Positions 25,961 through 36,247 of a stretch of DNA of 64,000 bases are shown here, piece by piece (position 1 is the stretch's first letter; each line of letters starts with the position of its first letter). The stretch comes from Amoeboaphelidium protococcarum X5 (taxonomy: Eukaryota; Fungi; Aphelidiomycota). Location: the NCBI GenBank assembly GCA_023515725.1, contig JALDTO010000251.1:62001-126000 (forward strand). The letters are read 5' to 3'. A program made the position numbers and the translations under genes. The notes under the pieces were generated by a model. That model saw only the letters and a program-made list of their open reading frames with translations, had not been told where the DNA came from and did not search any database.

Positions 25961-28717
25961 TCAATGGAAACCAGGATAGTAAAACTGAGACAAGTCTTGA
26001 TCCTTCACCATTACCTGACGCTGCGCGGTGGAGATTTTGTACGTGAGACGATGACGAGTAGGATAGAGCGTGGAATCAATTTTTCTTACAAGCAACAGTG
26101 GTAAACTGAATGATGTAGAGGAGCCCAATTCATTCATTTGAATCGAGGCAAGTTACGAAGGAAATCCTTTCGGAGTTTTATCAGACACATTACCACGAAG
26201 CATCGACTGAGGATCAATCGATGTCACAGCATTAGTATTATCGCCCCTTTGACCAGCTTGCATAATAATAGATTATAAATGAAGATTTGGTACATTTTAA
26301 GCCAGATTCTCTAGCCATAAGCCACGGTGAACGCAGTCAGAGATGGTCGGTACAACAACGATCTAACGAAGCTTAACTTCTAACGCAGGCTATTGTAACG
26401 CAATAGAATTTTCAGATAGTAGAGACACCAATGGAACGACAGTCAAATTATCAGTAGTGACAAAGTACTCAGCATGTAAAGTATTACATTGAACATTACC
26501 CAGGTATAACGCAAAATCACACAATCTAAGAGCTTCCTTGACGCTGACGTTACGACGCTTTGATATCTCATGAAGTATAAGGGCGAAGCTATACACATCA
26601 AATTTGATATCAAATACAGCAACCGTCCTTCCACCACGAACACCGCTGGCAACTTGATTAAGCGACGTGAATTCCATAAATTGCATATCATAGCCTTAGA
26701 TCTATGGGACAGGACTGAAAGGAAGCTACATAGCCGCAGATTATAACTACTGATACCAGCTATACTGAACTTGTTTAACATTAACTATGGTCCAAGTAGA
26801 AATTTCTGTGATTGCATTGTCTTTTGAGTAGACCGCGGTGGCCTCGCCACTATCCATATTGATAGAAAGGTAATATCCGGGTCTATCTGCAAACTCAAAA
26901 GATAAATGTTGCAATTAAGTCAGAGGCGCAGGTACAGCTGAGTCTACATCGGTGCTTCCATGAGTTTATGCAGCAGCTCTGCCTGATTTACTTACATCAG
27001 CTGTTCGCACTATCAATCGAGGTGATCTAAAGTCAGGATTAGTGCTGCAGATACGAACAATCTGTCCATCAAAGATGACTCGTTCTTGATTATCTTCAAA
27101 TGAATGAGTACCACTGATCTAAAGCTAGAAGGGATGCCAAGCAACATTCTTACCAACCAATACTCGTCGCCCTTCTCTGGCATTGAACTCAAGTGCAAGA
27201 CAACGCGTAGAAATATTCTAATTCTTGACGCGATTAAACAGCGCAATAGCAGAACCAGCAACTATAATGTCCGGTCCAAATGCTGCCTGGCTTGTGAGAG
27301 GAGACAGCGGTTTCTTTGCCAATTTTGAACTGAATTTCCTCTTGGAAGGCTTGGAGATGAGACTCATTGGCTGCGATTGGAAAGTCCCCAAGTGACCTTA
27401 TTTCTAATCTGATAATCTAAAATTGAGAACAAAATCCTTCTTTTGCTAATCTGCCACTAGTGATGGACCCAAAATCTGACCAACATGCTCTCTAACATCC
27501 TATTCTTCCTAATTTATGCCCATCTTGAGTTGACTGACATCGTTCATGTGCATATTCCGAAAGACTGCCAGTACGCTCTGCTCATCAGGTATCTACAGAT
27601 CCATCTGATGAAGTAAAAGCGATGGCTATCCTCCACAACTGTCCGCATTTAACTAACCGGTGTGATGCGGAGAAGTTGTCACACTGGGAACCTCTTTAGC
27701 ATCTTACTCCTCTCCAGCTGCTTTAGATCCGCTATTATCAGCATTATCATTCACACTACGTAACAGTTATGAGGACATGCTGATCATTGGAGGTGGGCAA
27801 AAGAAGCGCTTCTCTGTTCCATAGGACTTTTAAGCTATACAAGGAGTCATAACGGTAACTTTGCATACTTTACGATGCCCCGTATCATGGCAGAAATCAT
27901 CAACCACTTTCTAATGATCAGAGTGCCAGAGCTTAGCACCGGGCTCTTCCAATCTACAAATCACCGCGCGCGATTTTAAAAGAAATTCGTGCAAGTCATG
28001 ACTAATTGAATTTTGGGTGGAAGAAGCAAGAGCATCCTTTATAGAAACTTGAACCTGAGCACCTAAATTAGGATCCAACACGAGAGTAGACGGATCACTA
28101 GACGGCGCTCTATCCAACTCTTACACACTTTATCCACCACGAAGGTCCGATTTTCCCGCATTGAAGGGGTCACAATTAGAGTTCAGCGCCAGACGAGACG
28201 CAGCAGCAGATTCAACAGTACTGGTGGATTCATAGCATTACGGAGATCTAGAGGATAGAGACCGATTCTGACTATCGCTATACAAATTCACAGCAGCATT
28301 AGAAGGCGTGACACCCGTGGCAACTCTTTTATTGCTGTTATACAAAATTGCCAGATCATCGTTGGAACTTTGAATCAGGCGATGAGGTCTCTTGTTGTTG
28401 AGCGAAGAACTCTCGTTAGCCCCACTTCTATCCTAGACATTCAAAACTGGCGCCGAGATGGATTAAGGAATCGAAGGTATTAATTGATCATTAATAGAAG
28501 TTTCCTGCCACTGCAAAATGCTATTGCCACCATAATAAGGGAATTCCCCAGTAAACCATGTACTTGAATCGTTGGATGGATATGCGGCGTCAAAACTGTC
28601 CTGGCCGAATATCCCTTCACTCTGGTCAAACAGCTTCTATTGTTCCAGAATATTCTTCAAAATATCATTGATGTCTGTATTATAAGTATCATTATTATTA
28701 TTTGTCATTATAAGCAT
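25961..28717 (-). CDS. CSL / Su(H) / LAG-1 family transcription factor, about 918 aa
   Basis: Signature CIAQKSYGTEKRFFCPPP (Q=TAA), LHISSADK-type motif, beta-trefoil region, C-terminal PLLLVRKIDSTLYPT; long low-complexity N-terminus as in fungal CSLs. Confidence 0.9.
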
Positions 28718-28787
28718 CTAATATTTATATATGATTGAATTATAATATACTACTGCAATAATTGTGTAAGAGTCTATTTCAAATCAC

Positions 28788-28807
28788 CGTGGGAATGAGC
28801 GTGAGAA
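28788..28807 (+). promoter_or_regulatory. Tandem CSL-binding consensus sites CGTGGGAA (28788-28795) and CGTGAGAA (28800-28807)
   Basis: Exact matches to the established CSL consensus YGTGRGAA, about 70-90 bp upstream of the CSL ATG. Function is inferred. Confidence 0.65.
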
Positions 28808-29494
28808 AATTTCTCAAAACTCTTTGCGACTACGCCACATTGTTTTGCTCCAACTCAGCTGATTTGGTTTCCCCGTTCCGGCAATATATTTAGTCAGTGA
28901 CGTAACTAGCTTTCAATTCCAGGTACTCACACCACATTAAAAAAGTTTATCCCAACAATTGTCTAGAAACAGGTAGGAAATTTGCTAGTAAAAGTGCCTA
29001 ATCTCAAATTTTGGGTACGCTGCGCGTCCCCTTGCGTACCGCTAGATACGCCACTGATACTGCCTAATAATTATTTTATTTACTTATTTCTGGTATAAGT
29101 ATCAATATGCTGTACGACCCTTAAATAGCAATAGTTATCATTATCATTCTTTGAGTGTGCTCGTTAATGTTATCACAAGTAGTGGTGGCCTCTTTTCTTG
29201 CTCTTTCTGTGATGAAGCGTTAAAGCATAGTTGATGGTATTTATCAATTGATATCACTTTAACGTGTAGTTTACACAATTAATGGATCATGAACATAACG
29301 TACAGTAAATTAACAATGTACATGGCAGTTTTGCTATGAAGGCCGTTCTCATTCGTCTTTAACAGAGTTTGCATAACACCGAGTCAAAGCATAAAAATTG
29401 CCGCGTTCAAAAAAAGGCTATCCGCTCTAAGTTCTTCCGGTTAAAGTTGAACATAGATGAAAATGTTCAGTTACGCCGGTAGTAAAGCCAACTC

Positions 29495-29502
29495 TTCTCA
29501 CG
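29495..29502 (-). promoter_or_regulatory. Third CSL consensus site CGTGAGAA in the CSL/GMPPA divergent intergenic region
   Basis: TTCTCACG on the + strand. Confidence 0.45.
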
Positions 29503-29829
29503 GCAGGAATAACATCGTACGACACTTCCCCCAAAAATATGCGTTTCAAGCATGGTTGCCCTCTAAATGATCCTTAGTAAGAGATTCGCTGATGATAAAA
29601 TATCCGGCCGAAGCAACTTAACTGACTCATATAAAAATTGAACCCAATCAAGCGAGTCGAAGTGTAGAGATTTTTATATAAACGATAGTAGCATTGCGCA
29701 CTCAAAATCGCGCGTGGTGATCTTGAACAGCGAAATTCTTTCAAAGCGCGTTCTGAGTCAGCAGTTTTAAATATTTTTAAACCTCCGCGTCAACTGCTCA
29801 GAATACCAGCTAAAATAAACATCTGTAAG

Positions 29830-31191
29830 ATGCACAAGGCGGTCATCCTAGTCGGAGGTCCGAGTAGAGGTACAAGATTCCGTCCGCTATCTCTTACAGT
29901 TCCAAAGCCGTTGTTTCCCATTGCTGGTCTGCCTATAGTGTACCACCATGTTCAAGCTCTTGCCAAAGTCCCTGACATGAAGGAGATTCTGTTGATTGGA
30001 TTTTTTGAGCCAAGTGAATTTGCCCAGTTCTTGTAGTAGGTGGCTACCGACTTTCCATCTATTAACGTTAGGTAGGTTTGTCTATGCTCTGAGTAAAATT
30101 GACTTTTAAAAAGTTCTACGACGGTGTGTAGGTATTTGAGAGAGTTCTAATCATTGGGAACTGGTGGTGGTCTTTATCACTTTAGAGATTAGATTCTGCG
30201 TGGATCGCCAGAGTTCATCTTTGTTCTACACGCTGATGTATGCTCTGCATTCCCTCTGCAGAGTATGGTACAGTTTCATAAATAGAAGGGTGCCACTGCT
30301 GCTGGTACTATACTTGGTACCAAAGTCCCGAAAGAGTTGTCACACAAGTACGGATGTATTGTAGCTGAATCAGAATCTGACAAGGTGCTTCATTACGTGG
30401 AGAAGCCAGAGACATTTGTATCTGACCTCATCAGTTGTGGTGTTTACGTCTTCAGCCCGGTGATTTTCAAACTGATGGAGAAGACGTTGGATAGCGCCGC
30501 CTCTATTAGCACCGGTGTAGATCACTCTGAACACTTGAGTCTTGAACAGGATATCCTACGTCCACTAGCTCAAAGCGGTCAGTTATTTGTATATTAAACG
30601 AATGAGTTTTGGCGTCAGATCAAGTCTGCTGGATCCGCTCTTCCATCTAACAAGTTGTACTTGTATTAGTATCGTCATTGCAGTCCAACTAAGTTGGTCC
30701 CTTAGAAGAAGGAGTCAAGTGGTGAGGGTGGTCCTACCATCATTGGCGATGTGTTCATTCATCCATCTGCTCACGTTGATCCATCAGCTAAAATTGGGCC
30801 TAATGTGAGCATCGGTCCAAAGTGTAATATCGGAAAAGGTGTGTGTATTAAAGAGAGCATCATACTGGATAATGTTGAGATTGGTGCAAGCTCTTGCATT
30901 TTGTACTCTATTGTCGGCTGGAATTGCAAGATTGGCTAGTGGGTTAGAATTGAAGGCACGCCTCAGTATGCGGGTGAGAACGTCAGTCCAGCTGCCAATA
31001 TCTCTGATCTGGGTGCTAATGTTTCCACGTCTCCAATGACTGATTTGATGCTCCCAAATGGAGTCAAGAATTAGAGCGTCACGATTCTAGGTGACTCTGT
31101 CAGTGTGGCGAGTGAATAGATCATTCGCAACTGCATCGTCTTGCCGCACAAAGACTTGAACAGCTCTTACAAGAATGAGATTTTAATGTGA
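29830..31191 (+). CDS. GMPPA: Mannose-1-phosphate guanylyltransferase alpha-like; intron 30072-30131
   Basis: [50 protein letters not shown], hexapeptide repeats. Confidence 0.95.
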
Positions 31192-31289
31192 ATTGATATG
31201 CGCAATGTGAGAAAATATAATGATTAGCATTTCTATAAAACAACATTATATTTGTTCAGAATCTTGTGATCCCTTACGCTTGACTGACA

Positions 31290-35113: not shown

Positions 35114-36247
<1,134 letters not shown>

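Follow-up and report, generated by a model that had tools for sequence, protein, structure and literature searches.

Conserved CSL-type octamers upstream of two CSL genes suggest an auto- or cross-regulatory circuit in the aphelid Amoeboaphelidium protococcarum

Results

The window, a stretch of 64,000 nucleotides, was taken from the genome assembly of Amoeboaphelidium protococcarum X5, which comprises 23.6 Mb (23,646,343 bp) in 346 contigs. TGA is the sole terminator of genes in this assembly and both TAA and TAG are translated as glutamine; this UAR=Gln code is on record for A. protococcarum (PMC5304391). Read with this code, a single-exon gene (CSL-A) is found on the minus strand at 25961..28717, which starts with the ATG at 28717, ends with the TGA at 25961-25963 and contains 918 codons plus TGA. 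Its open reading frame includes 33 in-frame TAA or TAG codons that are read as glutamine, and one such codon interrupts the CSL hallmark CIA-Q-KSYGTEKRFFCPPP. Divergently transcribed from CSL-A and separated from it by a spacer of 1112 bp (28718..29829), a gene encoding an NTP_transferase (GDP-mannose pyrophosphorylase-like) is located on the plus strand at 29830..31191 and is interrupted by one 60-nt GT..AG intron (30069-30128).

The assignment of CSL-A was based on domain searches and on signature motifs of its translation. In a six-frame read-through search, PF09271 (LAG1-DNAbind, the N-terminal Rel-like domain) matched CSL-A with 45.8 and 25.3 bits at a cut-off of 25, the match being split by an insertion, and a 20-aa piece beginning with KSYGTEKRFFCPPP scored 38.2 bits against the same model. 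The translation has a long N-terminus as well as insertions and carries the signatures AQKSYGTEKRFFCPPP, ISKPSKRK and FNR..Q..STR; ISKPSKRK and ALFNRVKNQNISTR, which was also found, are candidate motifs of the BTD. For the BTD itself (PF09270), one sub-threshold Pfam match with a single stop-free piece of CSL-A was obtained (E 0.048), while searching all contigs with the Pfam BTD model returned no candidates, a result that is uninformative as the control genomes equally returned none. Residues 255-673 of CSL-A were aligned with environmental CSL genes by local tblastn (E 1e-26), and a PDB sequence search with stop-free pieces gave weak matches only (E 0.06-0.8), all of which were RBPJ, Su(H) or LAG-1 chains. 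The translation runs for ~245 aa past the BTD, and CTD-like stretches were recognised there by eye.

The genome-wide PF09271 search revealed another CSL gene of very divergent sequence (CSL-B) on contig C146, a homeolog of which is present on contig C207. CSL-B has 509 codons and lies on the minus strand at C146:330531-332057 (L014:3531-5057); its homeolog on C207 (L015:3552-5078) is likewise encoded on the minus strand. Both paralogs exceed the PF09271 cut-off and both keep the KSYG.EKRF.CPPP, ISKPSK and FNR..Q..TR signatures, including the FNR arginine of the BTD, which we take to be R218 of the mouse RBPJ sequence. For Cbf11 and Cbf12 of S. pombe, binding to the canonical metazoan element was described, and mutation of a conserved BTD arginine led to loss of binding (PMC3598750). 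In both homeologs of CSL-B a conserved TGA follows a few residues past the beta-trefoil WTI motif, and the next gene is Tim10-like. As this TGA is found right after the BTD in both homeologs, CSL-B appears to consist of the NTD and BTD only, without a C-terminal domain.

Three CSL-type octamers are present in the spacer upstream of CSL-A, and their positions and strands, which had been reported in an earlier note on this DNA, were confirmed in the sequence. Site 1 (CGTGGGAA, 28788..28795) lies on the plus strand, antisense relative to CSL-A, and is followed on the same strand by site 2 (CGTGAGAA, 28800..28807), a direct repeat of site 1 after a 4-bp spacer (TGAG). Site 1 begins 71 bp and site 2 begins 83 bp before the ATG of CSL-A, 12 bp apart from start to start, and together they span 71-90 bp upstream of it. 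The third octamer (CGTGAGAA) is found on the minus strand at 29495..29502. The proximal pair matches YGTGRGAA, which is defined as the high-affinity CSL response element in PMC3598750, as well as the broader YGTGDGAA, the definition of Su(H) sites that includes CGTGTGAA and leaves out TGTGTGAA (PMC3390367). Elsewhere in the window four further perfect CGTGRGAA sites were found, one of which, at 35465, had been missed by the earlier count of about three. An Rfam scan of the CSL-A spacer yielded no match.

The spacer had also been described as unusually long. It does measure 1112 bp, but 162 bp of it (28895..29056) are a MITE-like insertion that is absent from the homeologous locus. This element is bounded by terminal inverted repeats (CAGTGRCGTAACTAGC...) of ~16 bp (CAGTGGCGTAACTAGC), and at least eight more copies with 72-93% identity are present in the genome. 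Clean 8-bp target-site duplications, as in hAT-like elements, were seen in five aligned copies, but not in the copy of the window.

Transcript evidence was available from the only public run that covers the region. For the NTP_transferase gene a spliced contig was obtained, in which 29421-30068 is joined to 30129-31240, confirming the intron. As this contig begins at or before 29421, the leader of the gene upstream of its ATG is no shorter than 409 nt, and the third octamer lies underneath this contig. For CSL-A, the RNA contigs are short pieces of the 3' two-thirds of the gene and none of them extends over 27273-28848, so that the CSL-A sites could fall inside a 5' leader. The pair is located in the proximal promoter or the 5' leader of CSL-A.

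The whole CSL-A locus is duplicated as a homeolog on contig C98, in which the gene together with the adjoining 170 bp of upstream sequence is 91% identical and the distal spacer 84% identical. At 4-fold degenerate sites the divergence between homeologs is 0.17 for CSL-A and 0.175 for CSL-B. In the alignment of the two CSL-A loci, no difference is seen in the proximal pair or in the 4 bp between its sites, which together stand at the start of a homeolog-identical block of 58 bp (28783..28840). No other perfect non-coding run of the spacer is as long, and only the coding start of the neighbouring gene matches this block in length. Between the pair and the ATG, the C98 homeolog differs by a 13-bp indel, which indicates that the stretch adjoining the pair is free to change. 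The probability that the 20-mer of the pair survived by chance is 0.83^20, or ~0.02, although in homeologs that are ~9-17% diverged a conserved stretch of 20 bp is by itself modest evidence. Conservation between the homeologs holds for the pair and fails for the third octamer, which reads TTCCTCACTGCAG on C98 and is broken. Being lost in the homeolog and lying under the transcript of the neighbour, the third octamer is probably a chance match or lineage-specific, and it was rejected as part of a CSL-A module.

Upstream of CSL-B a spacer of 696 bp extends up to the stop codon of a palmitoyl-protein thioesterase gene, and no divergent neighbour is present. This spacer contains 8-9 CSL-type sites, eight of which are common to the homeologs on C146 and C207. 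On contig C146, where the cluster falls within 332160-332650, the site closest to the gene, counted upstream of the ATG, is AGTGGGAA at 107 bp, followed by CGTGTGAA at 130 bp, CGTGGGAA at 205 bp, TGTGAGAA at 387 bp and CGTGGGAA at 405 bp; further CGTGTGAA sites are found at 437, 473 and 487 bp, and the most distal one at 588 bp lies within a tandem duplication specific to C146. The eight common sites are embedded in homeolog-perfect runs of 148, 46 and 37 bp. For seven or more YGTGDGAA sites in this spacer a Poisson probability of ~3e-11 was calculated (lambda 0.11). Around the sites, the sequences of the CSL-A and CSL-B promoters are unrelated and, judged by this, the two are not one promoter copied twice. 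We regard the CSL-B cluster as an independent replicate and as the strongest new evidence for a putative CSL circuit.

The tandem duplication in the C146 promoter of CSL-B is ~100 bp in size (C146:332539-332739; L014:5540-5740), is absent in C207 and adds one CGTGTGAA.

The abundance of the motif was determined in the whole genome. CGTGRGAA occurs 918 times in 23,646,343 bp compared with 1163 occurrences of the reversed control, and for YGTGDGAA 3671 occurrences (one per 6.4 kb) compare with 3861 of its control. With the reversed control being more frequent than CGTGRGAA itself, the CSL octamer is not generally common in the genome. The 1112-bp spacer of CSL-A is expected to contain 0.043 CGTGRGAA sites (lambda), close to the earlier rough estimate of ~0.05 per 1.1 kb, and the probabilities of finding at least two or at least three are ~9e-4 and ~1.3e-5, respectively.

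Pairs of YGTGDGAA sites with a gap of <=60 bp were subsequently searched in the whole genome, using the reversed motif as control. For direct pairs 52 were observed (reversed control 24; ~17 expected by chance), for convergent pairs 14 (control 8) and for divergent pairs 4 (control 8), these genome-wide counts being inflated because several of the direct pairs derive from repeat families. The four CSL promoters, i.e. those of CSL-A, CSL-B and both homeologs, account for 11 of the ~70 tight pairs. Chains of more than two sites were found only in the CSL-B promoter, and the 20-mer of the CSL-A pair has two genomic occurrences only, both of them homeologous.

A pair of perfect CSL octamers is a fixed component of two repeat families, each of which is present in 6-7 near-identical copies. 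Copies of one family are found at C146:455859, 460786 and 915223, C192:698303, and C206:124234 and 129160, and the other family (CGTGGGAAACATCGG...) is present on C13, C192, C207 and C233. Mobile elements might thus be able to spread CSL sites.

Several other YGTGDGAA pairs are kept between homeologs with changes confined to the spacer. One of these, a CGTGGGAA ... CGTGAGAA pair, lies 200-270 bp upstream of a gene for GTP-type PEPCK (C98:1687981-1688031; L073:2982-3032, and C264:1002440-1002491); each homeolog retains both octamers intact, and three changes fall within the 35-bp spacer. We consider the PEPCK gene a candidate target of CSL. Another pair, CGTGGGAA / CGTGTGAA in convergent orientation, is located where a gene for a formate-tetrahydrofolate ligase (C1-THF synthase-like) begins (C98:13212-13243; L078:3013-3044, and C244:373346-373377) and is identical in the homeologs. 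The conservation of such pairs with spacer-only changes suggests that the motif may be a functioning element elsewhere in the genome too, with the pair search itself being biased toward retained pairs. At the ACC and nine desaturase loci, orthologs of the lipid targets of S. pombe Cbf11, scattered single sites or TGTGTGAA were found, which are unconvincing, and an S. pombe-like lipid regulon in the aphelid was rejected on these grounds.

Conservation in relatives had been proposed as a check. Upstream of 45 distant environmental CSL loci the motif was not enriched (10 sites compared with 11 of the control in 92 kb); these loci are all <=33% identical to CSL-A and CSL-B, many of their contigs are short or possibly transcripts, and aphelid relatives are not among them.

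Discussion

In Notch signalling, DNA is bound by CSL, which is nevertheless older than Notch. To our knowledge, the aphelid lineage is without Notch, and experiments on the pre-Notch role of CSL have so far been performed in fission yeast only.

We propose that the octamers at 28788 and 28800 are most likely functional CSL response elements of CSL-A, to which CSL-A and/or CSL-B would bind and thereby act on the CSL genes themselves. Such binding is suggested by the conserved CSL DNA-binding signatures of the proteins and by the GTG[G/A]GAA core that is common to the CSLs of yeast and animals. The two CSL factors would then constitute an auto- and/or cross-regulatory circuit that operates without Notch. 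The octamers match the motif, are rare, are closely associated with the two CSL genes and are more conserved than expected under neutrality, and a CSL circuit of auto- or cross-regulation is thereby well supported in cis. Since motif matches are found at both CSL genes, the CSL factors probably regulate the genes that encode them, as they do in fission yeast and animals, and we consider it reasonably likely that the 28788/28800 octamers and the CSL-B cluster are a real auto- or cross-regulatory module. The earlier note had put forward a CSL loop based on the gene's own three sites. Of this proposal, the proximal pair stands as non-random and conserved and is now accompanied by the denser, conserved CSL-B cluster, whereas the third site drops out, being neither conserved nor outside the leader of the neighbour. 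As the pair is non-random and conserved and the CSL-B cluster is independent and denser, self- or cross-regulation is the best reading of the data.

With 12 bp from centre to centre, two CSL cores may not fit together on the CSL-A pair, and simultaneous occupation of both sites may not be possible. The two sites could instead be used as alternative registers, or factors could compete for them.

Among the alternatives, the one that survives best, though we think it unlikely, is that the conserved blocks are regulatory but are used by another factor (e.g. another GGAA/TTCC reader), represent the core promoter or 5' leader, or are kept as transcript sequence. It would account for the fact that the CSL-A pair fills only 20 of the 58 bases of its conserved block and that the 148-bp perfect block of CSL-B contains more than motifs, and it is helped by the RNA contigs of CSL-A stopping short of a transcription start. 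It is difficult to reconcile with the recurrence of the same 8-mer family, 2 and 8-9 times, at two unrelated-looking promoters that have as their sole common feature the CSL gene they drive, and with a motif that is rare genome-wide and has its clusters concentrated at CSL genes.

That the CSL-A pair is random and was kept in the homeolog merely through recent divergence is very unlikely. Two CGTGRGAA sites in this particular 1.1-kb spacer have a probability of ~9e-4, the CSL-B cluster one of ~3e-11, and the pair resides within the 58-bp block, which exceeds every other perfect non-coding run of that spacer. These values have to be set against the ~17 direct pairs expected by chance genome-wide (24 in the reversed control), the decay of one of the three sites in the homeolog, and the survival rate of ~2% for the 20-mer, which is higher near genes. 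Least probable of all is that the elements serve the divergent NTP_transferase gene, for although one spacer is common to both genes and the third site lies inside the neighbour's transcribed leader, the pair is 71-90 bp from the ATG of CSL-A, whereas >600 bp separate it from the 5' end of the transcript contig and ~1 kb from the ATG of the neighbour, the non-conserved site is the one closer to the neighbour, and the CSL-B cluster has no divergent neighbour, with the upstream palmitoyl-protein thioesterase gene ending there.

Regulation of the CSL genes by CSL factors, the reading that we prefer, could be extended to a two-gene switch wired through the motif of the factors, in which the full-length CSL-A would have a minimal promoter of two sites and the CTD-less CSL-B, with its eight-site promoter, could be a dedicated competitor or repressor at sites common to both. 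If S. pombe cbf12 and the animal genes Su(H) and lag-1 are considered as well, such a switch would point to CSL self-regulation as ancestral in opisthokonts, with Notch having been grafted onto it later. This combined scenario is speculative and we regard it as doubtful. The earlier idea that CSL self-regulation predates Notch gains one data point from the aphelid, but it is neither new (PMC3516552) nor shown, and no motif enrichment accompanies it at the 45 environmental loci. Notch-independent CSL autoregulation has already been published for S. pombe cbf12, and no new principle is added here. What is new is that a second holomycotan lineage is involved, that each of the two paralogs has sites, and that one cluster equals the fly enhancer in density. 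Both CSL genes of a lineage near the base of Fungi have conserved motif clusters, which backs a recurrent, possibly ancestral, feedback on CSL genes. The loci also provide short, defined DNA probes and, with CSL-A and CSL-B, a pair of proteins for a simple in-vitro test.

Four known arrangements can be compared with the aphelid loci. In the SPS of animal Notch targets, two CSL sites are oriented head-to-head with a spacer of ~15-17 bp, which permits cooperative dimers of the Notch complex. The CSL-A pair resembles it in that two CSL sites are close together, and differs from it, as had been pointed out before, in being a same-strand direct repeat with a 4-bp spacer; it is thus not an SPS in either orientation or spacing. 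In C. elegans, LAG-1 sites are clustered in the lag-1 locus itself and mediate positive feedback. This autoregulation depends on LIN-12/GLP-1 (Notch) and the sites are largely intronic, whereas the aphelid CSL genes are free of introns in the region examined.

In Drosophila, the Su(H) ASE5 element contains five YGTGDGAA sites in 0.4 kb adjoining the Su(H) gene (PMC3390367). It is similar to the aphelid loci in that high-affinity YGTGDGAA sites form a homotypic cluster beside a CSL gene, with 7-8 sites in ~0.5 kb at CSL-B and two at CSL-A. ASE5 differs in that it lies downstream of its gene, integrates inputs from Notch, Vvl and the A-motif and is active in one cell type, while the aphelid sites are upstream. 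In S. pombe, ChIP-chip located Cbf12 at its own promoter, and native Cbf12-GFP rose more than 3-fold when cbf12 was expressed ectopically (PMC3516552). The cbf12 gene, which encodes a fungal CSL of class F2, shares with the aphelid genes the Notch-less holomycotan background, the presence of two CSL paralogs and, as proposed for the aphelid, the action of a CSL factor on its own gene. Compared with cbf12, the aphelid evidence is in cis only, consisting of motifs, statistics and homeolog conservation, and it places sites at both paralogs, with one dense cluster of 8-9 sites.
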